Shown one piece after another: positions 6,650 to 44,477 of a stretch of 64,000 bases of DNA (positions within the stretch are counted from its first letter, which is position 1; each line of letters starts with the position of its first letter). Under the pieces are notes generated by a model. The model was not told the DNA's origin, searched no databases, and was given only the letters and a program-made list of their open reading frames with translations. Source of the stretch: Lepidodermella squamata. Its lineage: Eukaryota > Animalia > Gastrotricha. The stretch spans positions 1,116,001 to 1,180,000 of the forward strand of contig JBLDXI010000042.1 in the NCBI GenBank assembly GCA_047495785.1. Direction: 5' to 3'. Both the position numbers and the translations under genes were made by a program.

Positions 6650-8540
6650 ATAATTCGCTTTTATTGTATTAGTCTACTTCTTCAAGGGAGTTCCGGTGTC
6701 CAAGATCGCACCCTGCAGCAACAAATTTGTTTGAATAAAAAAAAGTGGAAAGTATCGGTTTTACATGTTATGTGTCTTGAATTATATCACGTCCTGTTAT
6801 TTTTATTTTGTAGCCTGGTTTATAGACCCCTTGGTTTTATGGACGTAAAGAAAATGAATAAAAACACGCACGCGATTCGTTGCGTTCACTTTGTAACAGG
6901 ACACCAGTCATTGAATGACGAAAATACATAACGCGAGTGATTTATGAATGAGTCCTTTTAAAAACAGTTCTTTTTTTCATGGTCAAATCAATTTAGAGTT
7001 ACTAACTCAAATCTATTCATGAATTGCGGTTTTAAAATTGTTATCGCGACTGCGGCGCTCGTTGGCGTAGTCGAGTGTACGGCCTGGGTTCGCTGTTATT
7101 CACAGGTCGATGATTCGTTTGTCGATTGCCGTCAGCTTCCAGGCGGCTGTCTTCTCTTGCAAGAGTACCAGGTAAAATTCTGAACTTATTACCTTATTTG
7201 ATCAACAATTCGGGTTATTCTTAAGTATGGGGGAAACCTAACGGATCAAACGATGTGCTTGCGAGCTGTAAGTCTTGCTTCAAAGTACCCTGATAGTGAT
7301 AGTAATTTATGATTCTAGACTGCCAGGATGTGCTACCGCTGGTCAACCTTCACGATTCGCTGTAGACCTGGAATTCCAGGCTGTAAACGCGATGAAATAC
7401 AGGTGATGATACCTAAACTAGTCGAATTGCTGTGAAATTTCTGTTTTGGCCAGGTCAGTGGCTCGTTCAACGGGGCTATCCCGCACAAGACGAATGTTGT
7501 GAATTGTTTTTCGAGTGAAGCCACTTTCACGGTAATAGGATTCAACCGTACTATATTCAGGAATGCATTTCACATTGGACTGATAGAGCCAAGCCTTCGA
7601 CTCGTGCCTCGCATCTGCTGGTGGCGAATTCGGTACATGCGTTCCTAGTGGCACGCCCTGCTTCAATGATTTCCCCGTTAGCCTTGTCCTCCCTCCCAAG
7701 TTCTAATCGAAATTGTTCTTTCAAAGGTAAAGGGCCAGTCGAAAATTGGAAATCTGGACACTTGCCTTCGTAGCGCTAATGGTGCGGTGGCTAGTCATTG
7801 TTCAATAAACGTTTTCGATTTGTTTTAATTTTTCGATAAAGCTACGCTTCCTGATGTTCGGAAGCCACACAAACGGTGTTTCAATGCAGCGGATGGCAAA
7901 TTCACGGCATGCTGTCTTAACAGCACCGGCTGCCTCGCCAACGAAACTGACCAGTACTCGAGCCGAGTCTATCGGAACAAGGACAACTGTGAATCATGGG
8001 TAAGAGCTGCTTGCGATTTATCTCAATTCAATATGAATTGGAAAAATGAATTTTGTATAGTTCGCTGCTCAGTGTGACACTCCTGTAGGCAAGAAATGCT
8101 ACAGCATCTGCCCAGCTGAAACTACAAGAGTACGTTTAGAGTGAATTGGCCTTCGTTCTTCGCTCTATACTCGATTGCTCTTTTCACAGGTGAAAACCTA
8201 TAGTTCTGGGCCCAAGTTCGCGGCAAATCACGCCAGGTGCTTGCTCGAAATTCTCGCTCTAGGCTCCAACAAGACGTACTTCACATCACCACAGTCTATC
8301 GGCACCTTCCGCATGCAACTAGATGCCTGTGCAGAAAACGGCGGCCGGCTAGCCACCATGCAGACCAACCCGGACAAAAAAGTTTCATGTTGTAAACTCG
8401 TGTAAATGGTGTGAAAACACGTCCGTGTATTTTGCTGTAAAATCAGGTAGAAATGGTAACGACTCCTATGAATTTACATGATCACTTTATTGATTCAGCT
8501 CACACGAATTTACATTTAGACCTTAATTGGCCGCCGTTCG

Positions 8541-8787
8541 CCCTGCGCTTCCACGGGATTACACGGAGTTGTGAGTCTGGTTGATTTCGCCGGAAACGCT
8601 GGAAAAACCTGTCTTGACTTGCTTCTCCCAGCTGAATCTTCAAACTTGAGATTTCAACGACATTTCGCCGTTGTAAACTCATGTAAGAAGATTCAGCCAA
8701 GCAAAGCAAGTCAAGACAAGTTTTTACAGCGTTTCCGGCGAAATCAACCAGACTCACAACTCCGTGTAATCCCGTGGAAGCGCAGGG
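8541..8787. repeat. Long hairpin/foldback (arms ~100 bp)
   Basis: ccctgcgcttccacgggattacacggagttgtgagtctggttgatttcgccggaaacgct... recurs as its reverse complement ending ...cccgtggaagcgcaggg. Confidence 0.85.
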
Positions 8788-11644
8788 AAATTGGCTCAGC
8801 AATATAGCATTTTTCACACAGAATCGCAAAAACCGGCACAAAAAATCGAGAAACATCGTGTAATTCCGTGTAAGCACAGGCAGAGCAGCGCAGAAAAATC
8901 AATTTTCACACAAAATTCGCAAAAATGTGGAAAAAATCGAGACAAATAGTGTGATCAGCAGAGAATCGGCAGCATGAAAACAACAAGAGAAAATAGCAAT
9001 TTTCCAACAAACGACGATATTCACAGCAGCAAAGGCAATTTTCATGAAAATTTCAAATTCAATGATAATTCGCAAAAAGGACAAAAAATCGTTATTTTAT
9101 TGTCTTTCTTCGGCGCATTTTTGCGCCTAACTGCGACTCATTTGGCGTTCCCGGAACAGCCAGAATTCGGCCCTAGACAACAGCTTCAGTCCGCGGTTGC
9201 AACAGAATTCAGCTGAAAATAACGAAAAATGTAAATTTAGTAGAAACTTGATATCGAGGGTTGATCACCTGAATTTCAAAATCAGCAGCAGCAGCAACAT
9301 CAGCGTAATGAATGTACTTCAACAGAATCAGTAGTCGAGCAAAGTTCCTGAAAATTAACAGTTTCCCAATTCAGCTGAATGTGACGACAAATTCCCAAAA
9401 TAACCTAAAGTTTTCTAAGGCAGGCTTCACACTTCTTCATAACACATGCATCAGCTTGCAGTAGTTATACTCATGATCACAGTCTGACCCAGCATGATGT
9501 AGGTGATCGCACTTGGAAATGAAAATGGCAATCATTTTTTATTAAAAACTGTCTCAAAATTTACCTTCATTGCAGTCTGTTTTCGGGTTCGCTCGACGCG
9601 CCCGTTCCTTACAGTTGTTCGAGGACATAAAACTCGTCCAGAGTAAAAACTTGAATTAAATAATTATCTAATAATTAAGTAAATTTTCGATCAATAGTAA
9701 CTCACCACGTTTCCGGAAATCCGAGAGGCTAGGCGGAATTGGGGGCCATTGCCCAAATACTATAGTGAAACAGAAATTGAATTAAATTAAAACAAAAAAG
9801 TTCTCAAATCTGCGCCCTCCTGAGATTTTTTAAATTTTATATGGTGATATTATTGGGCCCTCCTTTTATCGAAACCAAATTAACAATAAGCGGTACCAAA
9901 TTTGAGAATTCTTCAGTGGCCTGAAATTTCTTTTCGGATTTTTTGCGGTTCAAGATCGACCACAATAATTCTAAAAAACTCACAAGTGAATTTAGCACAA
10001 TATTCTATATCAGACAGAGTGTTCAATCCAGAACTAAAAGTCTAAGGGTGTATTTCAAACGCTCACTTAAAAATCATTTTCAATTGTGAAATTCCATGTT
10101 ATTCAATTAAAAATGGAATTTCACAATGAAAAATCAATTCTCCGCGGGGAAATGAAATACACCATAATAGTCGTAGAATTATTCAATAAATTGACTCTTA
10201 GCATATTTTGACTTTGGTTCCGTAAAATGCAAATTCAGTTATTTGTTGAGAAATTAAACAATTTTTCAATTAATACTAAATTAATTCCGGAGAAGAAGGA
10301 TTCCCGGAAAATTCCATTTTTTCAATTGAAAAACTTCATTATGAAAAAGGCTGAAGAAATCTCAAGATGAAGATGAAAGATGAAATGCCTTGAGTAAATT
10401 TAGTGAGCAGCTAAAATGCAATTTTTTCTAATTTTTCATAATTTTCAGGGAATTTTAGGTGGGCAGTAAAAAATTCAATCATTTTAATTATAATTAATAG
10501 TCCGTGTTTTTGATTTTGGTATTTTTGCAAAAACACCGAATTGATCAAACAGAAAATTTATGACCACCGAAAATTAGTATATAGGCAGTATTAACATCCT
10601 CTAAATTTAAAATAATATCGCTGAAAAATGACACGATTTTTAGTACGAAGTACAAGCAGTTGGCGATGTCAAAATTCTAAAATCAAGCCCAATGTGTCGA
10701 GAAAAAATACTGCGAATGACTTGTTCCAATAGTAGCCCAGTCGCTAATAATCGCCCATCGCTAATAGTAGCCTAGGGTTGACAGGTGAAGTCGGTTGGAA
10801 AACATAAACGATCGACCAAAGATTAACTTCAAATTTTTTCAAATTTAGATGTAGTAATTTTGGTATCCCGGGCTGTCGTAAGAATAATACGTTTATGATG
10901 CAATTCGTGTTGATCGTCAAAAACCACGATGAATAATCGTGATAAAAATCCAATAAAATTATAGCTAACATAAATGAAAGACCTTTTCTAATTTTATACG
11001 ATTTGATAAACGCACAGGTGGAAAGCGAGTTATCTACGTTGCATTTGCCTGTCGAAATTATGACTTACTCAGGTAGAGGAATAAAGTTGGCATCGACAGG
11101 CTGGAATACCTGTTGGCGCTGTTTCCGTAAAATCGAATTGCCGAAGTCCCGTAATTGACCAGGCGCAGCCAATAAACAACCGCCATAGCCAATAAACAAT
11201 AGCTGGCAGCGGGCGATTATGTGCTTTGCCTGCTTACCTTTGACCTTGCCACTCGCAACCGAACCGAGGCAGGCCAACCAGTTTGTTCCATCAAAAAGCG
11301 ATCTGCATGAAATAAAAAATTGACCTGATTTCAAACGACGTAAAAAATCCCGATTAACTGTGTGGCTCTCTCGCTCCACTTAGTTTGTCCTAAGGCGCAC
11401 GTGCCAGATGTCACGTAACAATGGTCAGCGCATTATTTAAAATTGTTTTTTATTTTCAATTTTTAACATTTTTCTTCGGTCCTATTTCTCTCATTACATT
11501 TACATAATCATTTACAAGGATTTTTTTAAGACAACAGGTAAATTTTGTATAGGGGCTTACTCATTTCTGTCCGCAATCGATGAATAGCTGTCTTGAATTT
11601 CATTTAATTTAAATTAAATTCAATAATGATAATGGTTTTATTTA

Positions 11645-11645
<1 letters not shown>

Positions 11646-11706
<61 letters not shown>
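11646..11706. repeat. (TAA)n microsatellite, ~20 units
   Basis: Directly visible. Confidence 0.95.
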
Positions 11707-11707
<1 letters not shown>

Positions 11708-13800
11708 GATTTATTTAGTCCTCCTCTCGATCTATACCGTAAAAACGGTTTTGAGGAGGGCGAAGGCAGGCGAAAGATGGAAATCACCCACCCCCACAGT
11801 TATAGTTATCAAATTATAATGAAATTAAAAATAAACCTCAAGGTTTAAGCGCTTTCGAATTTTGAGAAATTGCTTATCCAAAAATGTTTTTTTTCAATTG
11901 CAAACCGATAAGTAAAATTTTGTGATGTTTTGATAGCGATTTTGCCTGCCAATACGGTGTGAAAAAACTTTTGCATTTGGCTTTTTTACTTGCACAATTT
12001 ACCTGCAGCGTGCCATGCTACCTAACATTGTGCCACATTATAATCAGAGACCGTTTAATTTCGATAATTCCAATCAGGCTTGATATGCCCGCTTGATCAT
12101 GAGCACCTTCATTACTAGAACTCGAATCTATGCGCCTTGCCTTTAGAACGTGGGAATTTTCGGCATGTCACTTGTTTCTATGATTTTTTCAACTCTATTT
12201 TCGCACAAATATTAATTTCTAAATATTTCCCGAAAATTCAAAAATTCCTTTTTTCAACCTGGCTAGGTTTTCTCCGAATTTTCCGGTAATTTTTCTCAAA
12301 AACAAATTTTTAATTTTAACCGACCTTGAGGGCTCTTGTTGATCACTAAATACGCAACGGACTTCGAGATTTGGATGGAGCGAGAATGGTTACAATAAAT
12401 ATATAATTTCAGCAATTAATTTCCACCCTAATAACGATGATTTTTGGTAAATTTTGAAAGCAATTATAGGTCACCAAGACACCACCAAGACACTACTTGA
12501 AAATGGCGAAGAATAGCTTAGACAAATTAATTTCATGACAAATAAAAAATCGAAATTAAAGCAAATCAAATTCCTGAAGTTTCCTCTAAATTTTTAAATT
12601 TTGATAAATTTCTAAAAGTTCTGAAAATCTCAAAAAATTCTATATGAAGCAAGCGGGAATAAAGCAAACATTCCACATTGCGCAATATTGCGTTGTTCTT
12701 TACGAAAATAACTTGGTTGGAAAGCATTTCCAAATTTTCCTGAATTTTCCTGAATTTTTAAAGTGAAGTCATCACGCGAAAGAACGCGAAATATTGCTAA
12801 AGTCTTGAAAATTGTGTTTCAAATTTTTGCGCTGAATTTCCGACTGCGTCATTTTCACGACTTCGCAGTTTGGCGTAAATAAAAAAAATCCGCTAAAATT
12901 TAACTTGGCCGATTTTTTTCAACATTTTCGCATGATAAAAACTAAAATCGCCTAATTTAGTTTTTGGTGAAAATTACATCAATTTTTTCAAAATTTTGTT
13001 ATATCCTGATTAATTTGTATAAATTCAGTCTACATGAATTTACACGGTGATTTTCGAGCCAGTATTTCTCATTTTTTACTCCGTGTATTTTCGTGTAACT
13101 ACTCTGATTTCTCCAGAGCCAAAGTTTTCTTGAAATTCCGCGAAATTTCCGATCTTGTAATTTCATGTAAAGTGAATTGCGGCTCGAACTTGAAAATTCG
13201 AGCCGGAGAATGATGGTAATATCGGCTGAATTTTCTAAATTTGTTCTTTTTTTATTCAATCGATCTTCCCACATGAGAATACAACGTCTTTTTCAGGATG
13301 TAAAATCATGTGAGGATATTCCAGTCGGGAAATCGTTCAGCTTCCATTGAAATACATCGAAGAAATAACTGAAGGACGAAAATCCATGAGTTTACATGAC
13401 CGAATTTCAGGGTTTACACGAATATCCATGAGTTTCCTCAGCCGAAAAACGACAAACCCTGTTTTACAACGCTGAATTCCGGATCGCTGAGCTGGTTCCT
13501 GATCTGCTTACATGAAAACACCCAAATAAACTGCTAAATACCTCAAAATACAGGAATTTACAATGTTAATTTACTCAAACTTTTTTGTCCGGGAAGGCCG
13601 ATGTCGCTGCAGCGATTCTCGCTCTGCCTCCCAGCGGCGTGGCTCTCATAGGGCTGACGGGTACTTTTCGCTGGCAGGCCGATAACTCGATCGTCGACAT
13701 GACTTCGCCGTTCTGGGATTCAAACAGCCCAGCGGGTTGGGGGTCTTGTAAGTGAACGTGGTCATTTTTCTAATACGCATCCACAAAAGGGCGCGATGTA

Positions 13801-13900
13801 GGATCCTTATATTCCTTATAAGATTCCTATATTCTTTATAGGATTCCTATATCCTTTACAGGATTCCTATATCCTTTTCATGGTTCCTATATTCCTATAA
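13801..13900. repeat. 20-bp minisatellite x5 (GGATTCCTATATTCCTTATA-like), intronic
   Basis: Five imperfect 20-mers with no spacers. Confidence 0.85.
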
Positions 13901-14988
13901 TGCCCGAACTTATGGGCCCAAATTGTACGATCAAAGTGGTTTCATTTTTCATTCAAGCTTTTCGCCTTGGCCTTGGGAATTTGAGGGCATAGGTTATAGG
14001 ATCCTTGAATTATCAGGTATCAGACCAGAATTTTGCGACTAAAGGGTCCACCAATGGGGGTTTCAACATCGACCTTGTCAACTTGGTGGTATGATACGTA
14101 CCCCGAATCTCTCGGTACTTCGCGCACTGATCCGCAAACTATAGATACTCTTTATAAAACAATTTTTTCCGATTTCCGATGTATTGTTCAGTTTCCTTGC
14201 TCTGCCTTTAGGTCTGGCAATAACTGGAAACGGCTTGGTCGATAAGGACTGTTCGCAACCAGCTGACAGCGCGGTTTGTTACAGAAGTGGCAACGTGAGT
14301 TCTGGAACTTTTTATCGCTTAGCTACACAGATTGCATGCTTAGGATTCTGCAAGTCTCAGGTCTCTTTTCGCGAAAGACCCTGTCGGTAACTGGTCGCAT
14401 GCTTCGGCAAAGTGCATATCGTTAAGCCGGGCGCTTCCAACCGTAACTGACAATGATACGTACAACCGAACCATCAGTATGATGAACGATTTCGGCACAT
14501 TGTACGTTTGGACAAATGGAAAAAGGTCGGATCTGGCTGAGAAAACTTGGATAACAGGCCAGACCTTCGATAGCTCGCTGATTCAAATCGCCGGTAACCC
14601 TGCGCCCAGCGAAACAGAGTACTGTTAGTTTTTCGCCGAACGTTTTCGGTTGCTTTGTATTTGATATATTCTAGGCTACGCGTTGGACAATAATCAGCTG
14701 AAGCAGCAACAATGCTTCAATCTCATCGCTGGATTGTGCGAGCGCATATAAAAATTGATGCGAAATATAACTGCGAGATGTCAAGACTGAAAAATGCTAT
14801 GATTAGCTTTCAACCTCACAATTATACCTTATATCGATTATCATTCCGCGCATTATCAATCAATAAAACGTTTCTGCTATCAATCTGGTAACAATTGGAT
14901 TTTCATTGACCATGGCGGCGTGACACTTTTGAATAGCTGCGGCAGAATTCTTGCAGAATTTTTGATTGTCCATTGTTTGTTTCTACAG

Positions 14989-16120
14989 GATCCAAGCATT
15001 TCTAGGTCGGCATAACACAAGTGTTCGGGCTGAGACGGCCTCTTACGAATCTTTTGTGTCTCTCCCACCTTTGGTTCATCCGTTATACAACGGAAGTCGG
15101 AATTTCTACGACTACGATTTCGCTCTACTGCGATTGATGAGTCCTGTTCCTAGATTCTCGCAGCAGATCAAACCGATTTGTTTACCTGACGTGACAATCA
15201 TGTGCCGAAACAACACTTTCACCGCAAATTCGATAGACCGATGCGATTCAGCGGTTGCAGCTGGCTGGGGTCATTTCGCGCTCAGTTAGACACCATCTTA
15301 CACCACCGCCTTACCACTATTTCGTATTTTAGCCAGGTTATCTGAGATCCCGAGGAAGCTGGAACTTCAAGTTCGATCTTACCGAAATTGTTCACTGGAG
15401 TATTCCCGCGGTCGATCTGATCCGGTCAACATCACCGACTCGAAGATGTGTTTGGCTGCCGATGACAGCGACGTTTGCTTTGGAGATTCTGGAGGCCCGC
15501 TAATGTGCTCGAAATCAAGGCAGATTTACCTACTCGGTATTATTTCGAATGGCGATGAGTCATGCAACGGATACTCTCCGGGAATCTACAGTCGAGTCTG
15601 CAAGGTTGTTGATTGGATTTCGGAGAACTCAGATGTTCGAAGCTACAGGAGTACTCCAGAACAGTCTTGTGCCGTACCGAATGTAACCGCGGGATTTGTG
15701 ACCCGTGTGGACCCAGATACTTCGGAAGATACTGGCTTAGTTCTAAGGCCTGGAGCTGCTGTGGAAAAAGGCGGGTTCGTGAGCGTTAAATGTAACCTTG
15801 GATATACCTACTCATCATCAGTTAATTTTGCCACGTGCATGCCACCATTTCGACCACTGATAAATGGAAGGTGTACCCTTCTAGGTAAGGAAAAGCTCTA
15901 AACATTTACAAGGCATTTGAAACGCGTCCTCTATTGAGGCTGCGTTACTGTTCCAGCGATTCAAAACGGCAACGTATCTCTTGGTCTGTCTAACGTCGGA
16001 GCCACCCGACGTATATTCTGCAACCTAAACTTTGCGATCCGGGGGAATGCTTCCATACTGTGCCGCTCAAATTCGACGTGGTCTCAGCCTGGTTATTGTG
16101 TCTCAAGACTAGGAAGATCT
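14989..16120 (+). pseudogene. Trypsin-like (S1) serine protease lacking its N-terminal part, followed by two sushi/CCP-like domains (exons 14989-15284, 15333-15884, 15939-16120)
   Basis: YDYDFALLRL (Asp102), SDVCFGDSGGPL (Asp189, Ser195), PGIYSRV; then CAVPNV...VSVKCNLGY and CVTVPAIQNG...FCNLNFAIRGNASILCRSNSTWSQPGYC. No His57 (TAAHC) exon, signal peptide or terminal exon found. Confidence 0.75.
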
Positions 16121-17010
16121 GTTAGTTTTGTCTAACCTAGTAGTGTTTCTGGGAACCGGGAAATCAGATCGCAAACCGGCTAAGTCGCGTTTTAAAACTA
16201 GATTTCAGGGGTATTGGTTAGGCCGAGCCAATAGCCTATTTGTGCTTTATTCTTTTACCTTATGATCTAAGTTGAACAAATGAATCAACATCGAATGTTT
16301 CCAAGCCCCACATTGGGCAGCTTCACATTGGCCAGTCGGGCACACCCAGGGGCGCCCGTGGATGAATTAAAGGTTCATTGCCTGGAACTCTTAAGTTGGG
16401 GGTACCCCCGTTACCCCCGTAATTTGCACATTTCAGCATGAAAATGATCATACCCTGTATAGATTCGTGAAATGTACGAGCAGTTGTGGAATGTCACAGC
16501 CGAGACGACTGACGTAGAGCAGGTGCGGCGACTCGTTGCGGAGATCGACGAATCCACTGGCGGCAAGTTCGACCCGAACTGGAGAGTGGAGAGCCGCCAG
16601 CCCATTGATAACAGGGTGATCACTCTGTTCTCTATGTTTTTATCACTTGGTTCATTGCTTAGTTAACGGGATCTCTCAACATCGCAGCAGGTACTTCCTT
16701 GAGTAGTCATTGCGTTATAATCCGAAGCGATAATATTCATTTCAGCCGCTGGGTAAACATCGAGAATTCCATTTCAGCAAACCAGGAAAGGCTCACGAGA
16801 GTACGCGTCATTAAATTCAATTAATTCAAGTAAATTGTGTATGCTTTCGTGCATGTGTATTTTTCTAAAGTCCGGATATTTGACAGGGCATGGATTTGGG
16901 TTGTGTATTTGCTCTGTACCGATCACTAGATAGACATTTCGACTTTCAGCTAAGTTTTAAAAGTAGGGCGTATTTCCCATCCAACAACAGCAGTTGGCCT
17001 CTTCTATGTA

Positions 17011-17115
17011 ATGTATCAGCAACTCATACCATTAATAATTCTTGCAGCGTATTTGAATGCTGGGAGTCTTGACGAGGAGATTCCGTGGTTCCAACCGGAT
17101 GCTCAAGAACCTTAA
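17011..17115 (+). pseudogene. 5' remnant of a channel gene (upstream region from ~16600 plus start of exon 1)
   Basis: MYQQLIPLIILAAYLNAGSLDEEIPWFQPDAQEP*; matches the start of copies D/E and then breaks off. Confidence 0.85.
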
Positions 17116-17728
17116 AGTTGTAACTTGTAACTAAGTGAGTGATCACTTAGTTCAGCTTCACTCCAACCGAAGGCCGACAGTGTTAATTACATGGTATCGG
17201 TCTTGGATGAAAAAAGTAGCAGACGAAAAGTCTGGATGTCGATTTGGTCGTCTTCGAACAGCTCGCCACGCCTGCCTGCCCGCTGAAACGTCCATCTCGG
17301 ACAGTGACTACTGACTACACTCCTGTTGCAGGTTGTAGTACTTTTCCAACATTTATTTCAGCCGCTGAGTAAACATCGAATTCCATTTCAGCAAGCCAGG
17401 AAAGAGGAAAGAGAGGGAGATATGTCCGTGAATACTCATCGCGTTTTAATCCGAAACTACATTCATTTCAGCCGCTGATTAAACATCGAATTCCATTTCA
17501 GAAGCCAGGAAAGACTCACGTGAGTATGCGTCATTAAATTCAATGCATTTAAGTGAAATGCGTATGTTTTCGTGCATGTGTTTTTTTCAAGTCCGGATAT
17601 TTGACAGGATGAAGATCTGGGCTGTGAATTTACTCGGTATCGATCTCTAGATAAACATTTTGCCTTTCAGTTAATTTCTAAAAGTAGGGCGTATTTCCCA
17701 TCTAACGACAGTTAGCCTCTTCTATGTA

Positions 17729-19083
17729 ATGTATCAGCAACTCATACCATTGATAATTCTAACAGCTTATTCGAAAGCTGGGAATCTTGACGAGGAGATT
17801 CCTTTGTTCAACCCGGATGTTCTTGAGTTGAGAGACTTTCTGATTTCAAGATGTCGCCTCGATCAACGTATTCGACCTGTTTCTAATTTCAGCGAAACTA
17901 CGCTCATATATGTATCGGTGGAACCATTTTATTTTCGAGGGATAAACGAAGACGAGCAATCGTAAGATTTGTTCTTTCTTATTTCTATTACCATGAATTT
18001 ACTTGTGTCCCTAGGTTTTCGTTTTATGGCGAGCTTGCTATCAGTTGGATGCACCCATGTGCGGCCTGGCAGCACGTTACGAATTACTCTCATATAAGGG
18101 CCATCGAGTTGAAAGGTTCCGAGACGTGGACTCCTATCTTCACTCATATAAATGCTTTCGAAATGTCGATAATTGAAAGGTTTTTAGCGAAATCTTGGAA
18201 TTGTTGTCTATCAATTTTCCTTTAAGCTTGAGCAAGAGAGCTACAGTTGTGTATTACAAGAATGGCAAAGGTGCAATGTACCTGCAAGGCGCTTACAAGT
18301 CACTTTGTAACCTAAAGTAAGTCAATGTAGTGATTTTTAATTGTTTGAATAAGAGTTGCATTCGGGCTAGGGTCAAGCTTAGTTATGACTTTTTACCACT
18401 TGATTGACTGTGATTCACAATTTGCTTTACGCAGCTTTTTGAACTTTCCCTTCGACAAGCAAACTTGTAGCATGGACATCAAATCTTTCTTCACCACACG
18501 GCTAACGAAATACCTCTTCGAGAATGGGGGCATCGAAATAGTGAAATTTGGCGAATTCATTAACCCGAGCGAAATGTGGCGATTGAATTCATACAACGCC
18601 GGATACATTTTGGACGAAAGCGATAATGGGGAAACAAATTATTCATCACTGCGATTTACCTTTGACTTCGAACGGCGTTACGGATTTCATTTGCTGACAA
18701 TATTTTTCCCAAATATCTGCCTACAACTGGTTCTGATCGCAGCTGGATTCATGCCACCTGAGCACCCCGATCGGCCAACATTTTGCATAACCGTCGTACT
18801 GGCCTATGCAGTTTCGCAATCGAGCATCAGCGAATCCTTACCAAAATCAGCCGAGATACCTTACATTTTGCTATTTCTAGCCGGTCAAATGGCCATTGCT
18901 GTACTTTGCGCCATCTATTGCCTGATTGCTAGCGAGTTAGCCAGCAGGAAGCGGTTTTTACTCATTCAAGCCAATTTCATGAATATCAGCCTCATTCGCC
19001 TGATCGATTGTATCGTGTTCGCAGTCATTCTAATCATCACTGTTTTAACAGATGTCGTTGTGCTTATATTAATGATCCAATAA
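17729..19083 (+). CDS. Cys-loop ligand-gated ion channel subunit, copy D (exons 17729-17961, 18015-18179, 18227-18316, 18435-19083)
   Basis: Cys-loop CNLNFLNFPFDKQTC; same architecture as B and C. Confidence 0.92.
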
Positions 19084-21930: not shown

Positions 21931-21964
21931 TTCTAGTGTTAATTTATAGGAATTGTATTTTGAA

Positions 21965-24177: not shown

Positions 24178-25474
24178 ATGTACCAGCAACTTTTACCATT
24201 TATGATTCTTACAGCCTATTCGGAAGCTGGGAATCTTGACGAGGAGATTCCGTTGTTCAACCCGGATGCGCTTGAGTTGAGAGACATCCTGATCTCAAGA
24301 TGCCGCCTCGATCAACGTATTCGACCTGTCGCTAACTTCAGCGAAACTGCGCTCATATATGTATCAGTGGAGCCATATTATTTTCGAGGGATAAATGAAG
24401 ACGAACAATCGTGAGAATTGTTCCGCCTTATTTCTACCATGAATTTACTTGTGTTACCAGGTTCTCGTTTTACGGCGAGCTTGCTATCAGCTGGAAGCAC
24501 CCATGCGCGACCTGGCAGCACATTTCGAACTATTCACACATAAGGGCCATCGATATGAAAGGTTTGGAGACTTGGACTCCTGTCTTCACTCATATAAATG
24601 CGTTCGAAGAGTCGAATATTGAAAGGTTTGCTAGCTAAACTTTGAATTTCGCCAAACTATCTACGCATTTCCCTTCAAGCTTAAGCAAGAGAGCTACAGT
24701 TGTATATTACAACGATGGCAATGTAACAATGTACCTGCAAGGCGCTTTCAAGTCACTCTGTAGCCTAAAGTATGTTAATAAGAGTTGTGATTCAACTTGC
24801 GGTGATTTAAAATTCCTTATCGCAGCTTTTTGAACTTTCCTTTCGACAAGCAATCTTGTGGCATGAGGATCGAATCTTTCTTCAACACACGGCTAACAAA
24901 GTACGTTTTCCAAAATGGTGGCATCAAAATAGTGAACTTTGCCGAGTTCATTAACCCGAGTGAGATGTGGCGATTGAAATCTTACAATGCGGTATACATT
25001 CCTGATGATAGCGATGATGGGGAAGTGCCCTATTCTGCACTACGATTCGCCTTCGACTTTGAACGTCGTTACGGATTCCATTTGCTAACGATATTTTTCC
25101 CGAATATCTGCCTACAACTGGTTCTGATCGCAGCTGGTTTCATGCCGCCTGAACACCCGGATCGGCCTACATTCTGCATAACTGTCGTACTGGCCTATGC
25201 AGTTTCGCAATCAAGCATCGGCGAATCCATACCAAAATCCGCTGAAATTCCGTACATTTTGCTATTCCTAGCCGGTCAAATGGCGATTGCTGTGCTTTGC
25301 GCTATTTATTGCCTTATTGCTAGCGATTTGGCGGGTAGGAAGCCGTTTCTACGCATTCAACCTAATTTAATGAATACGACCCTCATTCGCTGTATTGATT
25401 GCATCGTGTTTGCAGTCATTCTAATCATCACTGTTTTAACCGATGTTGTTGTGCTCATATTGATGATCCAATAA
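24178..25474 (+). CDS. Cys-loop ligand-gated ion channel subunit, copy E (exons 24178-24410, 24461-24625, 24680-24769, 24826-25474)
   Basis: Cys-loop CSLNFLNFPFDKQSC; same architecture as the other copies. Confidence 0.92.
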
Positions 25475-29200: not shown

Positions 29201-30940
29201 GCTCAGCTCTAGAGTCAACCTCCTGTGGCGGCCTTGCTGAAATCAAAGCTGGCGCGATTGCCTCCCTAACCTCGCCTGACCACCCGCGACCATACAAGGG
29301 CAATATGCGATGTGTTTGGCTGATCAGAGCGGTTTGTCGAATTATGTGCGAAATAGTAATATTGCTCTCTCTTTTGTAACCAGCCTGAAGGGAGCGGATT
29401 GCTGTTTGGGTTCGAAAAAAGGCCGGAAGTGAAGCATTCGAAATATTTTAATGGTAAAGATTGAATTTCGACATTCGAATCGCATATTAGATTTTTCTAA
29501 ATGATTCAGGCATTTGTGAAGACTATGTCGAAATCAAAACCGACGCAGACCCTACGAAAAGTGGGCCAAAGTGAGTCATTCTCCGATCTTAGAAGTAGAC
29601 TGAATTATTTTTTCTCAGATTTTGCCGAGTTGGAGTTTCAGCCGGCCGCGCCGCTTGGACTGACCGAAATTGGGCGATGGTGATCTTCCAAACGTTCGAG
29701 AAAGGTGACTCGAGCAACATAGGCTTCAATCTCCACATCTACGCAACTGCCGCCGGTGAGCGGGCGTCCGACCTAGCGAAAAGCGGTTGTAGAATCACGA
29801 ATACCGGCTATGATTACGAGGGGCCACTTTCAACGACAGACTCGGGCAAGCAGTGTGCCAATTGGGAGGAGTTGAACCGCCACGGCCTGCATCCAGATAA
29901 CTTCCCCCAGGGTACAATGAAGGGCAACGGGTGTCGAATGCCGTACAGCGACGTCAAAGCTCCGATGTGCATCCTCGCCTCTGATACTAGCAAATTCGAA
30001 TATTGCTCGAAAATTCCGGTCTGCGGCTCAACCTCTCGATCTGAAACCAACGATCGTATGGTGAAACACTTTTTCATCGCTAAGGAATCAGCGGCAAGTG
30101 ACGCCTTCGAAACTTGCCGTAAAGAAGGTGGCTACCCAGCTGTTTTGACGGACGAAAACGATGTGGATAAAGCTGTTTCAACTCTCGATGGATCACCTGC
30201 TTGGATTGGACTGCGTTACCAGCCAAAGAATCAAGCTTTCTGGGTCGATGGGTCAAACTTTGATGCTGAAATCGATTCTGAAGCAGCGAATTGGTGTCTG
30301 AGCTATCGAGTTGAAGATGGAAAGGCTGTTTTCAAAGCTGACGAATGCGCTGAAAAGAAGCCCGTTATCTGCCGGTTCTACCGATCACCTAAGGTTAACT
30401 TTCAAAGTTCAGGGAATTTTAATGAAATTTCAATTTTTTAGGTGACCTATTATGATTATGTTGCTGAGGAACTGGCATGGCAGGATGCAGCGGAATTTTG
30501 CCGGGAAAAGGGTGGTTTCCTTGCGATCGCTTCTTCTGCTACTGAACTCGCGAAAATCGAGAAGATTTTGCTGAATTTTGCCGATGAATCTGATAGTCGA
30601 GGCGCGTGGCTCGGCGCTCGAATTCCCGAAGCCGGGCGATGGCTTTGGTTTGGCGGGGTAGCTGTTTCGGAAGAAAAAGCTCCGCAAAAACAGGCTGATC
30701 GTGAATGTAACAGCTTGAACTTCTTCTCTTTAGCTTTGATTTCAATGTTTTTGTATCTTAGGTGGAGCTTTAGAACCACAAGGCGTTTTTGCGGCTGATT
30801 CTTGCGACGTGGCTAAACCAGTGCTTTGTGAGTTTCTGAAAGCTGAGTCGGCTGAACATGATTTTGTCAAGCCCGCGAACGGCGAGAGAATTTTAATACA
30901 ATCTGACGAAGCTAACAATGAAGAAGACGATGAATCCTGA
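26275..30940 (+). CDS. Astacin (M12A) metalloprotease copy 1: signal peptide, acidic prodomain, astacin, EGF-like, CUB, kringle, two C-type lectin domains
   Basis: Spliced HEIGHALGMEHEQKRSD zinc motif; SVMQY Met-turn; CQNGGYQDPNNCRKCLCPDGYGGDDC; LTSPDHPRPY...CVWLI; YEGPLSTTDSGKQCANW (kringle); two CTL patterns (AFETCRKEGGYPA...WIGL and WQDAAEFCREKGGFLA...WLG). Confidence 0.9.
26735..27427. mobile_element. Non-autonomous TIR element with CATAGAC termini and 8-bp TSD (P or hAT superfamily), in astacin 1 intron 2
   Basis: CATAGACAACTCTATACAGATCG ... CGATCTGTATATATAGTTGTCTATG, flanked on both sides by GAAATCAC. Confidence 0.9.
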
Positions 30941-33678: not shown

Positions 33679-36600
33679 ATGATTGTTTTGCCTATTATCC
33701 TCATTCTTACGCTGTGTCTTTCTAGCTGCCATTCATCGGCTTTGGGTAGTAGAAATGCCTATAATGACAGCTACCTAACCAAGGTAATTTTATCGCGAGT
33801 TCTATTCATTTTGTTTGCCCCTCCGATAATTCGTCTCGTAAATATTTTCAAATTCTAAAAAATCCTAAAAATCCATATTTCAGGTACGACGCCATGCTAG
33901 CGAGGAGCCTTACAACGAAGATCTCGATTATACAGATGGCGGCGAAACCTCCACGCCAGCTGTTGATGTCGACGAGGACACAGCGGTTAATGACGACACT
34001 GAAACAGCTGCTATCTACGAGGAAATAGCCCAGCTAATGGAACAAAGGCGAAAAGCGATGACAGAGGTAGGTGGAAAATTTCAAAATCTGCGGCTACTGT
34101 TTAAAATGAGGTTGCACAGTCTATTTTTTTAGAAATTTTGGTTTGAAAAATTAAAAAAATTTTGTTTAGAATTTTCCGGAATTTTCAACGGTCATGAATT
34201 TTGAATTGTTTTCTGAATTTCAAACTGGGAGTTACGAGACGCTCCTTCGGTGAAACTCTTAAGGCGGTACCAAACTTCATTTAAATTTAATACCTAACCT
34301 TTTTATTCGGTTTATAACGGGTTAGGGTTAGGCTTAGGGTTATGGCTCAGGGGACTTGAAATTGGGGATTTAAACATTTTTGGTAATGAATTCACTACCG
34401 TCATTTGGGGCGAGTTGGGCAGTGAACAAATTAACCCCTGATTTTATTGCATATTTACACGTTTTCAAGGGTCCGGATTCCGAAAATTCATTTATCTCAA
34501 TTCGCCCAGGTATGGGGCAAACTGGGCAGGTGTTTTGGGGCGAATTTGCCCAATTCACCCCAAACGACGGTATATCGCAATTTAAATCACCGAGGCTCAA
34601 AATCTCTCGCTACTTTTTATAATTGGGTTGCACCTTCCGTTTTTTTAGAAATTTAGGATTTGGAAAATTTATTTTTGAAATTCAATTGTTCGCAAAATTT
34701 CAGGAATTTCTAACAAAAATTAATTTTGAATTTCTATTTTGAATTTCGGAAATTCCGAAATTTGCAATTTACAAGACGCCCCATTGCTATCGTACTTCGT
34801 ACACTGCTCGAGTTTAATTTGTGTCGTTTTTTCATTAACAGGATGAATCGCGCCAAGACCAAGAATCGGAAAATGAAGACGAGGACGAAGCTGTCAGATT
34901 GATGCCGCCGAATCCTGACGAAGAGGACGATGAGCACCGGACTATCGATTTTCGACCGGTGCCTGCATGTGGAGTCCGCCATTCGGCCGATCAAGCCCGA
35001 GTAATACTAAACGAGTTGAAGAATGAATTAGGACTCGAGACCGACGACGACTCTGTCCGTGGAATCAACGTTGAGACTAGGAAGTGGAACTTTCCGATAT
35101 ACTACTCTTTCGACAAAGCCATCAGTAAGAAGTTTCCTTGTATCTTGAAATTGCAGCTAATTTTGTTCCCATTAGCTCGAGATGTTGCTGATGTCATTCG
35201 GAAGGCAGTAAAACAGTGGGAGAAAATGACTTGTGTTCGATTTAGACTGGTTTTCCGCCCGTTGCGTAGGAACGGAATCCATTTCATTAGTGATGACGGG
35301 TAAGAATAACTCAATATTAACAAAACGATATTATATTTTTCTGTAACAGGTGCTACTCGATTCTAGGAATGTCCCAGGAAAGAAAATTCCAGAATGTTTC
35401 GATTGGCACAGGATGTGATATGGTTAGTACTTGTGCCAATACTCTGTTGATGCACTACCTATATTGCAAATTTAACACAGGTTGCCATAGTAGCTCACGA
35501 AATAGGCCACGCCCTTGGATTGGTAAGTGAACTAAGTTTCAAGCATCTTCTATTAGCATTTAATTTGTTTAGGAACACGAACAGAATCGTTTCGATGGCG
35601 AGACCCACATTCGTGTCTTCTTCGACGCCATCGAGAAGTTTGTAAAATTTCTAAGCTATTAAACGGCGGAGGTACTCAACGGCTGAGATTTGAATTTCTC
35701 AGCGTTGATTGGACGCTCTTGGCTTACGCTTAATATCATACTTCCGTTAGGCCCGTAATCTTGAATTTGATATCAGTAGATAAAGAAAACGTTTTTATGG
35801 GAGCGAAAACTCGGACTTTTTGACTTCGTCAAAACGGCGGCGTCAAAACAGCCAGAAAACAAATCGAACGTTTTCTAATTCTGAACGTGTCAATTTTCTT
35901 ATTAAAATAATTTAACATTTAAAGCTTGAGAAATATTTTCAAATTTAATTATCTAAAATTTAAAATTTTCCATGGTAACGCATTTGTGGGGAATTCAGAA
36001 TTTCAGTTCGCCCGCGTCGCCTGACCTTAGGGTTCCAAAATCTTGACGAAGGACGTCCCAGGGTATGTGAAATTCAAAATTCATGCTTGAATGGAAAATA
36101 TGTTTCGTTTCGGTCATCTTTTCATGCTGCTATATAATGAATTCAGCCATGCTTTTCATGAATTTGGCATGCGCTGATCTCTGGTAAGTGTCCTTCGTTG
36201 AGATTTCGGTCCTAGGTCAATTGACGCGTCGATCACCTATCCGAATATTGAATTTCCCCCCTTTGCTTTACAATGGCGGCCGCTATAGCGGCTATATGCT
36301 ACGATACTAGTTTTCTATTATTTTCCATTTGTTGCTTACATAGGAAAAAGCATCACAATTTCTACCCGTTGAAGGCTAATGAGGATAGAAATTACGGAAC
36401 GCCCTATGATTTTTCGTCCGTCATGCATTACACCTCGAATTCATTCTCACAAGATCGGAAACAGCGCACTATCGTGCCGCATGATCGCCGCTACTTAGCT
36501 TCGATGGGTCAGCGCGATTTCATTGCGTTCAATGACGCGAAACGGGTCAATTACCACTACAACTGCATGCGTGAGTTTCATTTCTTACATCAATAGATCA

Positions 36601-38525
36601 GGATTTCCTAATTTGAAACTGGAAATTCAATGTTCTTCTTTTCTAGAAATGAGCTGTGGATCAACTAAGGTGAAGTGTCAAAACGGCGGCTACCAAGATC
36701 CGAACAACTGCAGGAAATGCTTGTGCCCCGATGGCTTCGGAGGCGATGATTGCTTAGCGCTAGAGGCAACCTCATGTGGCGGCGTTGCTGAAATCAAAGC
36801 TGACGATGTTGCCTCTTTAACCTCGCCCGACCACCCGCGACCTTACAAGCCTAATATGCGCTGTGTTTGGCTGATCAGAGCGGTTCGTCGAAATAAGTTG
36901 ATAATTTCAATATTGCTCTCTTTTTTATAACTAGCCAAAAAGAAGCGGATTGCTGTTTGGGTTTGAAGACACGCCGCAAATTAAGCATTCGCAACATTTT
37001 AACGGTAACGATCAAATTTTGACATTCAAATCGTGTATTAGATTATTTTTGTGATTCAGGCATTTGCGAGGACTATGTTGAAATCAAAACCGACGCTGAC
37101 CCTACGAAAAGTGGGCCAAAGTAAGTTTCTTGTATCATATTAGACCGAACCGCCTCACATATGATTAGACTCCTTCAAATCTTTAAATTTAATAAATTTT
37201 GTTTAGATTTTGCCGAGCTGGAGTTTCATCTGGCCGCGTCGCTTGGACTGACCGAAATTGGGCTATCGTGATCTTCCAGTCATTCAAGAAGGGCGACTCG
37301 AGCAACACAGGCTTCAATCTCTTCATCTACGCAACTGCCGCCGGTGAGAAGGCGTCCGACCTAGCGAAAAGCGGTTGTAGAATCACGAAGAACGGCAACG
37401 ATTACGATGGGCCAGTTTCGACGACTGATTCAGGCAAACAATGTGCTAACTGGGAGAAGTTGAACCGCAGCGAACTGCACCCGAATCACTTCCCACAGGG
37501 TACAATGAAGGGCAACGCGTGTCGAATGCCGTACGGCAACGTCCGAGCTCCGATGTGTTTTCTCGCCTCTGATACTAGAAAATTCGAATATTGCTCAAAA
37601 ATTCCAGTCTGCGGCTCAACGGCTCGATCTGAAATCGGGAATGCGATGGCGAAACACTTCTTCCTCGCCGGCGAATCAACTGCAAGTGACGCATTCGAAA
37701 CTTGCCGTAAAGAAGGTGGCTACCCAGCTGTTCTAACTGACGATAACGATCTAGATAAAGCTGTTTCAACTCTCGATGGATCACCAGCTTGGATTGGACT
37801 GCGGTACCAGCCAAAGAATCAAGCTTTTTGGGTCGATGGGTCAACCTTTGATGCTGAAATCGATTCTGAAGCAGCGAATTGGTGTCTGAGTTATCGAGTT
37901 GAAGATGGAAAGGCTGTTTTCAAAGCTGACGAGTGCGCTGAAAAGAAGCCCGTTATCTGCCGGTTCTACCGATCTCCTAAGGTTAGCTTTCAAAGTGCAG
38001 GGAATTTTGACAAAATTTCGAATTTTTCAGGTGACACTCTATGATTATTTCACTGAGGAACTAGCTTGGCAGAATGCGGCGGAATTTTGCCGGGAAAAGG
38101 GTGGTTTCCTTGCGGTCGCATCTTCTGCTGTTGAGCTTGCAAAAATCGAGAAGATTATGCTGAATTTCGCCGATGAATCTGATAGTCGAGGCGCGTGGCT
38201 TGGAGCTAGAATTCCGGAAGTCGGGCGATGGAATTGGTTTGGCGGGATAGCTGTTTCGGAAGAACAAGCCCCGCAACAAGAGGGCGATCGTGAATGTGAT
38301 TACTTGCTCTTTTTCTCCTTGGCCTTGACTATTTCTTGTATCTTAGGTGGAGTTTTGGAACCAAAACGCGTTTTCTCTGCTGATTCTTGCGACGTGGCAA
38401 AACCAGTGCTTTGCGAGTATCTAAAAGCTGAGTCGGCTGAACATGATGTTGTCAAGCCTGCGAACGACGAGAGAATTCTGATACAAGCGGATACAGCCAA
38501 TGAAGAAGAAGATGATGTTTCCTGA
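33679..38525 (+). CDS. Astacin metalloprotease copy 2 (same domain order as copy 1)
   Basis: HEIGHALGLEHEQNRFD, SVMHY, EGF, CUB, kringle and two CTLs; exon-for-exon paralogue of copy 1. Confidence 0.9.
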
Positions 38526-40075: not shown

Positions 40076-43000
40076 TCAAAACAGGGCGGGAATGAAGAAA
40101 GATGCGCAGTTGATTTCGACGATACGCTGTTGGTAGAGAGTCAGTGCTTCATTGAAAACGTTGAGACAAGCAAAACTGCCTGTGAGCGTTTCGTATTCGA
40201 CAGCCCAAGATCTAATGAGTGCAATTCAAATAGAGCTGAATAGTTGAGGTTTAACAAGAATTAGGTCAAGCTTACCGGCCCATCATGAACTTGCCGGTTT
40301 GAGTGATTGGTCTCGATGACAATTGGGCACCCTGATTGCCCTTCCAGTCGCACAGAAAAGACATTTTGCTGGTATTCGAGTTGAAAGTCGTGGTGACGAA
40401 ATTCCATTCTAAGTTTTCCGGGCAACTGGCAGAAACGGAAAAGCCGTCATAAGGCCTCGCCACGTAAGATTGATCGGCCGCCAAGAATTTGAGTCCTACG
40501 CCTGAGGAGGCAGGTTCATATTCTAATATCGGCAATTGTAGATTACCAAAATGCCTAAGGCTGAAGAACGCAAAGGTAAAATCGCCAGTTTCCAGCTTAA
40601 CCTTGTCAGAAGTCACGACAATCGGGTCCGATGTGTCGAAGAAAAGCGCCGAGCGTACCGAGAAGAACGGGCCGGGAGTCAATTCTAGTTCCGTGTTTGG
40701 GGGAGTTGCATTAGCGATAGGATCGACGCGATCCGATAAATCAGAAACCAGCGGCCACAGACCTATGTGTGAGGGAATCAGAGTTTTCAATGACTCTGCT
40801 GGCCACGTTTTCCCAGCGTGGATCTGAAGGCATCTTCTGCGAAGAATCCATAGCTGTTGAGTGGAGAGGGCTTGCTTGAATACGGATAGGCACGACATTT
40901 GACCCGGGAAGCTGATGGAGTTGTCGAAGCTTCGGCCGACTCTCATTCTGGTACTCGTTTTCGGTACAGGTACTACTACCGCGAAGCTGACCGAGTCGCA
41001 CATCGCAGTCACTTTTCCAATAGAAGGGTCGTATATGAATGCGAAGTAGGTCCAAGAGTTGAATTGGCTATCGATTGATCGGCAGGTGACGAAATTCCCA
41101 GCAGATGCATCTGCAATTGTAGGAAAATTAGGCATTTGTTGAGCATAATAAAAATGGCTCTAATTCTCTCGAGTCGCAGGGAAGGTCCCCCCCAGTTCGC
41201 AAGGCCGAGGTGGATAACCCGGGTGGATAAAATTCGGGCCTGAAAATAGCCCCGAGGATCCTTGGCCTAATAGGTGGGCAATTTTAGAAAAAAAGTCCTA
41301 TGTGGCCTTAGATCCTGAATCGCATCCTGGGATAAGATTTCTAGTGATTATTTAGCAAATTTTTCCCTTACCTCTGTATACATTAAAGGCATTGTTTGAA
41401 GGGTTGTAGTAGGCACGAAAAAGTGATGTACTATTGTCGTAGAACTCGATAACTGGAAAATTTGAGTTGCTAAAATCGGAGAAGCCAGCGTAGATCGCTA
41501 TGGTGAAGGATGACTGAAGTGCACTAAGTTTGCTACTAGCGATTTCCAAATAGCCAGCTGTGGCACCGACAGCGAGCGCAGTAGAAGGGAAGTTGAAAGG
41601 GCCGCTGGTAAAGGTCACCGAACCTCCGGAGAAAGTTGCGTTCACGTCATTACCGCTGATATCCCTTATGTCGAACGCTTGCGTTAGCGGGAAAAAAGCC
41701 AGCTCTTGAGGTAGCCCGAATACAGACTCTGGAGATCATGACCTAATTTTGAACAAAATCGATTGGAAATGGTGAAAACGCACGTTGTTCGCAAAGCGTC
41801 AAGGTATCAAACACTGATGAACCAGGAATTTGCGGCTAAATTACAGGAAGAAATGTTCACAGAAAAATCTCATTTTAAAAATTACCCAGGCTTCCGAGCA
41901 ATTGCTGGTAACTACTGTACAGTAGGTTTTCATCAGCAATTTGTTGGCGCAAATTTTGTACTGTGGATAAGCCATAAGGTAGAGCTATAACTTGAAATTT
42001 AAAATCTTACCGTAACTGGGTTGCAATTGCTTTCCAATGAATATATCAAGCTCCCATTCTATAAAAAATGAAGGATCAATAGAAGGAAGAATCTCGTTTC
42101 CGAAATTACGTTAATTTCAGGATTAGGACAAGTTGTGCCATTAAAGCAGCCATTGTAAGAATTATCGGTGTAGAAGCAGCGAATGTACGAGGGGGCAGCT
42201 GTAATATAGATCAATTATGAATTATTAGTAAAATTCGCTGAAATACCTTTGCAAATAGCAAATGAGTCATATGAGACTTCATCTTGGTTTGGAATCTTCG
42301 AATAGAAAGCTTATATAACTTGAGCACATGTCGTTGTAGTACAACTCACCGTCGATGTTGGACAGCTCGAGCCAACTGGAACGCAAATCGCGAAGACCTT
42401 AGTGTTGGAATCAAAACATTTCTTATGTTTCCCCTGCAAAGAAAATAGAAAACTTTAAGGTAAGTTAAGCCAAGCTGCGTTAGGTACCTGAGTGGCAGTA
42501 ACGCGTGTTTCAAAATTGGAGGCAAAACTTGTCGAATTCGACCCGATGATCCCGAGCTGTAAAAAAAGTCATTAAACAAAGAAATTAAAGGAAAAATAAC
42601 AAAATTAATTACATCATATTTTCCAGTTCCGTTTGGACATGAATCAAGGCAGCTACCCCCAGTTGCAGTATCGTAGCACATATTGATTGGCTAGTAACAT
42701 GATTATTCCATATAATTCGATAGAATTTGAAACGAAATACCCCAGTTTCGCAAGCTGCTTTCGTCGGTAAAACAGATTGACTCGGTGTCTGTAAAGCAAA
42801 CAAAAATAAAAGGATTTGCTTTCATGATATCAACTTACATCTGTTCCATCGCATGGCAACTGAGCTGGCTTACAACCGGAAAATTTCGGCTCTGTTGAAC
42901 CAAAACAGCGCTTATGAGGAAAAAAAGACTGAGGAGCTAGGAGGAAAATACAAAAAATCTTAGAAATTAAGTCAATTTAAAAAAAAACCGGATTCGCATT

Positions 43001-44477
43001 CGCCTTGATTCGAAAAGGTCACACCAGCCGAAAACTGATTTGTACTACCGTCTGGGCAATTTTCACTGTTATCAGTCGGTACGCATTTGACCAGAGCGTA
43101 GGTTTGCGAGTTCAGACACAACTGCTGCGGTTTCTAGAAATAAAGTTGAGTTTCGAAGTAGAAGAGCCGAAACTTTATTCCAATGCCTACAATATACTGG
43201 GCAAGATCGGTCAAACATCCAGCATAGTTCGAACCGAAATCCTTCGTTGTTTTGAATGTTGCCACCTGAGTAAAAATAATGACATTTTCTTTTCATAGGA
43301 GAAGAAATATCCTACCAAGCTCATGGGCGATCTGCATGCCCCTCGGCAAACCAACGAGGAATCAGATTTACATAACGCTGCTGGCTAGAAGCAGTAAAGA
43401 GGACGAATTTACGCAAAAGTATCAGTTGTTCCAACTAACCCCATCTGAGCAATGGCTTTTGTCGATGTATATTCCGCCGCTGAAGTCCTGGAATAACAGC
43501 ATTGAGTCCAAGTTTTCATTTGGAAAGAAGAACTAACCTGAGTTTGTGAGGTAACATTGCAACCAGGGGTAGCAGCTTTGCATCCTGCGAAGGAGCGATC
43601 AGCTTTCCAGAAGCAGCGAACGTGAGAGGAATAGTCCGGATTCCTGGCGACTAGACATAGAAACAAACAAAAATGGCTGGAAAAATGGTCGCTTCCGAGC
43701 AATAGCAAACCTGGAATCTCGTTTAGGCAGTCATTCAAAGTGATTTTAGGCGGCAATTCAAGCTGGAAAAATTGCAACAAAATTATAGAAATGTTCTTCA
43801 AACCCAAATTCAAATTTTAAACTTGAAATTGAAGCACGAAAAAATACCTACCCATCCCGCTGAACAGTTGCTTTCTATGGGAATGCAGGTAATGACGGAG
43901 TTTTTCGAACACTGTTTCGCCGGGTTACTCTGATCAAGATAAAAATTGAAGTTCTACAAATCCATAAATTTTGTTAATAATACCATGTAAGGCCGAATTG
44001 TATCGATGCAAGCTTTGTATCGGGGCTTGAACGACAATCCCGCAAAATCAACGTGCTTGAATAAAAATTTATAATTTTGTTAAGAAAGAAAATCAAGTTA
44101 ATTTTACCTGAATTTCGTCGTTTGAGCATGACCCCATTTGAGGAAGACATCGAAGAGTGAACAGTTTCGTGTTGTAGCAGCTGCGGGTAGACTATATAGG
44201 CTTTGCTAAGCCATAGCTCCAACCAAAGATCGTTTTTGATAAAACTTACGCCCTGTGTACAGGTTGAATAACTTGAAAAATTCGGACCAAGCTGAATTGA
44301 AATACAATGATCAAAGCACGTTGTAATTTCCAGTAAAAATACATGGGCTTCATCGAATACGTCGCAATCATCTTTGCAGGCGATGAATTCGTCACTCCAG
44401 CGTGAAAAGCATCGCTTGTAGCAGTCACAGCAGCTAAAGGCGATTGCTAACAGCAGTAAACCTTCTACGAGCTTCAT
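40076..44477 (-). CDS. Secreted protein: ~11 four-Cys repeats plus two LamG/concanavalin-like domains (~20 exons)
   Basis: Signal peptide MKLVEGLLLLAIAFSCCDC; short GT-AG introns keep frame; C-terminal LAFFPLTQAFDIRDISGN...SFTIAIY...WTYFAFIYD...FPGQMSCLSVFKQALS and a second similar unit (IGLWPL...DFTFAFF...WNFVTTTFN...CLNVFNEALT). Confidence 0.8.

Follow-up and report, generated by a model that had tools for sequence, protein, structure and literature searches.

Two neighbouring paralogous genes of Lepidodermella squamata share an array of four-cysteine modules and carry different C-terminal heads

The analysed stretch of DNA (the window) comprises 64,000 nucleotides (nt) of the gastrotrich Lepidodermella squamata (assembly GCA_047495785.1, contig JBLDXI010000042.1, positions 1,116,001 to 1,180,000), and all positions given here are counted within it. 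Its G+C content is about 41%, and its introns are very short. Two neighbouring genes, gene 1 on the plus strand and gene 2 on the minus strand, are located within 40 kb. Each of them codes for a putative signal peptide, a tandem array of a unit with four cysteines and two C-terminal domains (hereafter heads), which are C-type-lectin-like in gene 1 and LamG/ConA-like in gene 2. The two genes are paralogs for secreted modular proteins which have the module array in common and display alternative heads. An earlier note made from the letters alone had proposed this composition, and its count of five units and two C-type-lectin-like domains for gene 1, and of about eleven units and two LamG-like domains for gene 2, was recovered here (Table 1).

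The relationship of the two genes was investigated at the protein level. Their N-terminal regions are colinear over 250 amino acids (aa) with a BLASTP E-value of 2e-24, and all eight introns of gene 1 in the shared region have a counterpart of the same phase in gene 2. Two extra introns occur in gene 2, one inside unit 4 and the other after unit 5. The homology over the first five repeats and the matching introns claimed in the earlier note were clearly confirmed, and the six peptides that it had quoted were all found in place and on the right strand.

In total, 16 units were defined, five in gene 1 and eleven in gene 2. They are 42–54 aa long and follow the spacing C-x7-10-C-x3-8-C-x15-25-C, where the loop between Cys2 and Cys3 mostly counts six residues. 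The first three cysteine columns are kept in every unit and the fourth in 15 of them, the exception being unit 8 of gene 2, for which the arginine codon reported in the earlier note was verified. The four cysteines of the proposed pattern stand, while the size of about 45 aa and the spacing had to be corrected to the values above; the aromatic residue expected directly after Cys1 is present in only nine of the 16 units. Usually, a unit is made of an exon of 23–37 aa containing Cys1 to Cys3, followed by a micro-exon of 14–26 aa with Cys4. Two units (unit 4 of gene 1 and unit 6 of gene 2) are encoded in a single exon. A short-loop subtype (C-x7-8-C-x3-C) is displayed by unit 5 of both genes and by unit 8 of gene 2. 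Beyond the cysteines, the units are strongly divergent, with a mean column identity of about 20%. In leave-one-out tests with a profile hidden Markov model (HMM), 12 of the 16 units scored above all 200 composition-preserving shuffles; both copies of unit 5 failed and units 6 and 10 of gene 2 were borderline. Unit 5 of gene 1 showed the weakest fit to the unit HMM, yet it aligns with unit 5 of gene 2. A scan of the six frames of the window with the HMM revealed no further copies of the unit outside of genes 1 and 2.

The array of gene 2 shows a higher order. Unit borders are in phase 0, except for phase-1 introns after units 3, 6, 9 and 11. Units of the '[RK]CF' type are found at positions 1, 4, 7 and 10, short-loop units at positions 5 and 8, and secondary BLAST alignments between both genes are offset by three and six units. 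The phase-1 introns, the spacing of the '[RK]CF' and short-loop units and the shifted alignments suggest a three-unit super-repeat and hint at growth of the array by blocks of three units.

Structural models of the two single-exon units were obtained with AlphaFold2. Both follow one pattern, a beta-hairpin and a short strand plus a helix at the C-terminus, with a predicted local distance difference test (pLDDT) of 86.9 and a predicted template modelling score (pTM) of 0.66 for unit 4 of gene 1, and a pLDDT of 75.0 for unit 6 of gene 2.

After both start codons, 7019 (+) and 44477 (-), a pattern scan and three-frame listings revealed short open segments with three cysteines in alternation with even shorter ones holding a single cysteine. 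The exon chains of both genes were curated by hand. The repeat region of gene 1 (7019-8381) comprises nine exons and eight canonical introns of 50–61 nt; that of gene 2 comprises 21 exons and 20 canonical introns of 48–60 nt, apart from one of 89 nt, with a frame that is open throughout. Two sequencing runs were compared with the window: X1, which is presumed to be RNA and holds 5% of the sampled words, and X2, a DNA run. At low depth, contigs of X1 cover gene 2 between about 39955 and 43965. Two pieces of gene 2, 42246-42199 (48 nt) and 43315-43266 (50 nt), are exactly skipped in contigs of X1 and not in those of X2, and both are canonical GT..AG introns on the minus strand. Their lengths were used as the expected intron size for exon curation. 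The splicing read in the earlier note is supported by X1 at these two junctions of gene 2 and at none of gene 1. A naive exon-chain predictor was also applied. It found most exons of gene 2, but invented exons of 3–21 nt and failed on gene 1. One of its introns in gene 2 (40546-40502, 45 nt) was rejected because a contig of X1 runs unbroken through 40507-40571.

In the region 40600-43100, two versions of X2 contigs were observed over much of gene 2. They differ at many closely spaced single bases and by small indels, with some of these differences located in introns, and look like two diverged haplotypes or alleles.

Both proteins are predicted to be secreted and soluble, as a hydrophobic signal is present at the N-terminus and no C-terminal anchor is seen in either of them. 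Gene 1 displays two hydrophobic maxima, the N-terminus and residues 310-328, the latter lying within a lectin-like domain. No second membrane-type segment was detected in the hydrophobicity reading of the gene 2 model.

The heads were assigned by several approaches. For gene 2, the exon coding for 295 aa matched Pfam Laminin_G_3 (PF13385) in domain 1 with E=2e-7 (31.7 bits for a cut-off of 27.6). Domain 2 gave no Pfam match of its own. The two C-terminal halves of the protein, however, align over about 210 aa with E=7e-9, from which two LamG-like domains are deduced. A homolog search with the 295-aa exon revealed no relatives among proteins of 162–516 aa. For gene 1, submission of single exons to Pfam gave no match for the C-terminal domains. 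The 93-aa exon of domain 2 was annotated as Lectin_C in 94 of 100 feature matches of the ESM Atlas (top score 0.93), and its best match in the PDB was KLRB1 (E=0.012). Weak similarity, in register, to a neighbouring C-type lectin domain (CTLD) verified by Pfam was found for domain 1 (E=0.03) and for domain 2 (E=0.006). Domain 1 of gene 1 is split by an intron of 5.2 kb (8382-13596) and by another of 464 nt (13748-14211).

The 5.2-kb intron is AT-rich and contains a (TAA)20 microsatellite at 11646-11706 and two foldback inverted repeats. The first foldback has arms of 119 nt (8541-8659 and 8669-8787), 90% complementary and 9 nt apart, and the second has arms of 67 nt at 10034-10176. These repeats are probably inserted repeat elements.

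Table 1. Positions of genes 1 and 2 and of their parts in the window.
Feature	Positions	Strand	Remarks
Gene 1, complete coding sequence	7019..14751	+	13 exons, 503 aa; open frame, GT..AG at every boundary
Gene 1 exons 1-7	7019-7171, 7226-7267, 7319-7402, 7454-7531, 7587-7676, 7727-7781, 7842-7999	+	
Gene 1 exons 8-13	8061-8129, 8190-8381, 13597-13747, 14212-14294, 14344-14623, 14675-14751	+	
Gene 1 putative signal peptide	7019..7075	+	hydrophobic N-terminus, read by eye
Gene 1 unit 1	7076..7267	+	three-Cys exon part 7076-7171 and micro-exon 7226-7267
Gene 1 unit 2	7319..7531	+	7319-7402 and 7454-7531
Gene 1 unit 3	7587..7781	+	7587-7676 and 7727-7781, followed by a phase-1 intron
Gene 1 unit 4	7842..7999	+	one exon only; without the within-unit intron of gene 2
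Gene 1 unit 5	8061..8249	+	short-loop subtype, C-x7-C-x3-C; 8061-8129 and start of exon 8190-8381
Gene 1 C-type-lectin-like domain 1	8238..14294	+	assigned from Cys and 'LIGL' landmarks in the sequence
Gene 1 C-type-lectin-like domain 2 and stop codon	14344..14751	+	ESM features, PDB match, similarity to neighbouring CTLD
Gene 2, complete coding sequence	40076..44477	-	24 exons, 976 aa; open frame, GT..AG at all boundaries
Gene 2 exons	21 from 44477 to 41784, then 41728-41372, 41110-40276, 40211-40076	-	
Gene 2 putative signal peptide	44430..44477	-	N-terminal hydrophobic maximum
Gene 2 unit 1	44250..44429	-	
Gene 2 unit 2	43984..44191	-	
Gene 2 unit 3	43711..43929	-	phase-1 intron after
Gene 2 unit 4	43440..43650	-	
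Gene 2 unit 5	43191..43384	-	short-loop subtype; internal intron 43315-43266 confirmed by X1 contig
Gene 2 unit 6	42989..43133	-	single exon holds the entire unit
Gene 2 unit 7	42741..42936	-	
Gene 2 unit 8	42488..42690	-	short-loop subtype; Cys4 replaced by Arg, codon CGC at 42505-42503
Gene 2 unit 9	42247..42433	-	intron after, 42246-42199, confirmed by X1 contig
Gene 2 unit 10	42011..42198	-	
Gene 2 unit 11	41784..41960	-	
Gene 2 LamG/ConA-like domain 1	40820..41728	-	exon 41728-41372 and first third of exon 41110-40276
Gene 2 LamG/ConA-like domain 2 and stop codon	40076..40819	-	alignment with domain 1

Several other genes were identified in the window. On the plus strand, Cys-loop ligand-gated ion-channel genes are represented by at least five long exons resembling one another (1-369, 3700-4416, 5984-6646, 18349-19080 and 24806-25471), and both Neur_chan_LBD and Neur_chan_memb of Pfam were found on one of them. 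They form a tandem array which is interrupted by the gene 1 locus. Directly 3' of the stop codon of gene 1, the region 14966-16234 (+) contains a partial trypsin domain, namely its C-terminal half (Pfam E=9e-17), and then Cys-rich exons resembling CCP/sushi; no N-terminal half of the protease was found for this gene fragment. This trypsin gene, 3' of 14751, does not belong to gene 1. Further downstream, 29599-30438 and 37196-38041 (both +) are tandem paralogous exons, each coding for a Kringle followed by a CTLD (Pfam E from 1e-8 to 1e-12). The second copy is preceded by a CUB exon (36499-36927).

The identity of the unit was addressed by sequence and structure searches. All 16 unit exons were submitted to Pfam with hmmscan at E up to 10, and no recurrent family was obtained among the small Cys-rich domains (TIL, Kunitz, ShK, WAP, CBM14, LDLa, Kazal, TSP1 and others) or elsewhere, a result of low sensitivity for such short single sequences; the isolated matches to Omega-toxin (0.033) and MarR (0.2) are due to chance. 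A profile of the unit gave one chance match only against the sequences of the PDB (E=4.9), the features of the ESM Atlas did not recognise the unit (top score 0.64), and hhalign of the unit alignment with an alignment of cbEGF returned a probability of 0.09%. A scan of 1.84 billion representative proteins was done with a profile built from three full units and 12 three-Cys exons, a restriction imposed by MAFFT, which had set the micro-exons on the wrong cysteine. It resulted in two matches, both artefacts: P0001, a bacterial-looking protein of 4275 aa rich in cbEGF, to which a clean HMM of the 16 units gives about 0 bits, and P0002, a translated tandem repeat. Foldseek and VIA-align comparison of the unit models with the PDB, AFDB and the Atlas gave no significant superposition on a small Cys-rich domain and only look-alikes of the MbtH type. 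No description of such a module was found in the literature searched. With respect to a known domain, the checks with HMM and structure foreseen in the earlier note thus delivered no real match in Pfam, the PDB, hhalign or Foldseek. All searches are consistent with its claim that the repeat is not a described domain, which nevertheless is unproven, as HMMs barely link even the two paralogs.

Taken together, it appears somewhat probable that genes 1 and 2 code for two soluble secreted proteins in which an array of disulfide modules serves as spacer or scaffold for alternative recognition heads. A number of observations speak against this proposal or limit it. Transcript support for gene 1 was not found in the RNA runs searched, and a 5.2-kb intron interrupts its first lectin-like domain. 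The contigs of X1 measure just 87–170 nt, and the RNA nature of this run is a guess. The profile used in the large scan modelled Cys4 from three sequences only, and the fold search is weak and of low reliability at a domain size of about 50 aa. An HMM built from gene 1 only scores gene 2 at 0.8 bits, which is no detection, and one built from gene 2 only scores gene 1 at 15 bits, corresponding to E of about 1600 at library size. The repeat being barely detectable even between paralogs, a blank sequence search is no proof of the absence of the module elsewhere. The EPN/QPD and WND motifs are absent at the expected places in both lectin-like domains of gene 1, as read from the spliced models, so that glycan binding is not assured. 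The role of spacer or scaffold would follow by analogy only, and the binding part may just as well be the array itself.

The models themselves may be questioned, since the exons were chosen by hand after the errors of the naive predictor, gene 1 is devoid of RNA support and Cys4 is missing from unit 8 of gene 2. It is nevertheless very improbable that one or both models represent an artefact or a pseudogene, with a repeat created by picking exons to a pattern. Canonical borders and consistent phases are seen for each of the 35 introns, and the frames of 503 and 976 codons contain no stop; the paralogs agree in intron positions and phases, along with their BLASTP similarity, and two junctions are seen in X1. 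A more serious alternative is that the module is a highly diverged form of a described small disulfide-rich domain (e.g. EGF-like, TSR-like, Kazal/FIMAC-like or chitin-binding), which would have been missed because it is short and little but the cysteines is conserved. This is considered unlikely: Pfam gave nothing at the permissive threshold and the hhalign probability with cbEGF is negligible, the number and spacing of the cysteines fit none of the patterns from EGF to LDLa listed further below, the consensus of the disulfide-directed beta-hairpin (DDH) fits a single unit, and the structural comparison was led by bacterial MbtH-like proteins devoid of cysteines and not by an extracellular module. 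The module is likely undescribed and probably a lineage-specific building block.

By analogy with arrays of LDLa, TSR or SRCR, the array may be the main ligand-binding or adhesive part and the heads accessory. The strong divergence of the units outside the cysteines, as for diversifying surfaces, and the lectin-like heads devoid of canonical sugar-binding motifs are in favour of it. Low conservation is equally expected of a spacer, however, and this alternative is regarded as rather doubtful. A more far-reaching proposal, which is held only tentatively, combines two claims: that the unit represents a truly novel extracellular fold, in which two disulfides stabilise the hairpin, the short strand and the C-terminal helix, and that it has become a principal exon-shuffling module of the secretome in this lineage, present genome-wide with lectin, LamG, protease and other heads.

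The anatomy of the two proteins is firmly supported: the putative signal peptide is followed by an array of a small four-Cys module of 42–54 aa, and beyond the first five units in common, two C-type-lectin-like heads are carried by gene 1 and two LamG/ConA-like heads by gene 2. According to the favoured proposal of spacer and alternative heads, each module would consist of the beta-hairpin, the short strand and the C-terminal helix, pinned by two disulfides. The array, of five versus eleven units, probably gained units when exon pairs or three-unit blocks were duplicated. The array may form an extended, protease-resistant spacer or a multivalent scaffold and hold the C-terminal recognition heads off the attachment surface, possibly in matrix, mucus or immune recognition. 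From the earlier note, the modular reading with an array of variable length and different heads was retained; its term 'lineage-specific' is not established, given the low power of the sequence searches.

The locus offers a clear case of domain shuffling, as a five-unit array with conserved intron phases precedes two unrelated heads. If truly undescribed, the module would represent a new family among the building blocks of extracellular proteins. It would then also account for the failure to annotate many secreted genes of this compact, short-intron genome, since micro-exons are invisible to scans of open reading frames and no domain profile exists. For the lineage, genes and domains would be better predicted and annotated with a profile of the family. 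No long-standing open question is touched by the finding, and poorly sampled invertebrates commonly have Cys-rich modules specific to their lineage.

Modular secreted lectins are the closest known systems for the whole proteins. They include the selectins with their array of CTLD, EGF and CCP, the mannose-receptor family, and invertebrate proteins combining a CTLD with EGF, CCP or ShK. Similarly to these, both genes code for a signal peptide, tandem disulfide modules of variable number and lectin-type domains on the same chain, and the layout of one exon per module with symmetric phase is also found. In contrast, the module matches none of EGF, CCP and ShK, the array occupies the N-terminal and the heads the C-terminal part, with no membrane anchor in either gene, and the paralog carries LamG-like heads on an equivalent array. 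For the heads only, the comparison is with Laminin_G_3/ConA-like (PF13385) and C-type-lectin-like (PF00059) domains, from which the heads of both genes are very diverged.

For the unit itself, the number and spacing of the cysteines fit none of the patterns of EGF, TIL, Kunitz, ShK, WAP, CBM14 and LDLa. EGF-like and cbEGF domains resemble it in size (about 40–45 aa for EGF), in being extracellular and tandem, and in being based on a beta-hairpin. They differ by six cysteines including C-x-C-x5-G-x2-C, where the unit has four and a modelled C-terminal helix and gives no match to EGF in Pfam. The DDH of small toxins (C-x5-19-C-x2-[GP]-x2-C-x6-19-C) is a structural motif of single-domain peptides. 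In the unit, a beta-hairpin is likewise surrounded by four cysteines, at broadly comparable distances; the DDH consensus, applied as a regular expression, however, fits only one of the 16 units, which form a family of tandem modules. MbtH-like proteins (PF03621) resemble the unit in topology only (E>1, identity of 8–17%) and, unlike the unit, are cytosolic partners of bacterial nonribosomal peptide synthetases and have no disulfides.

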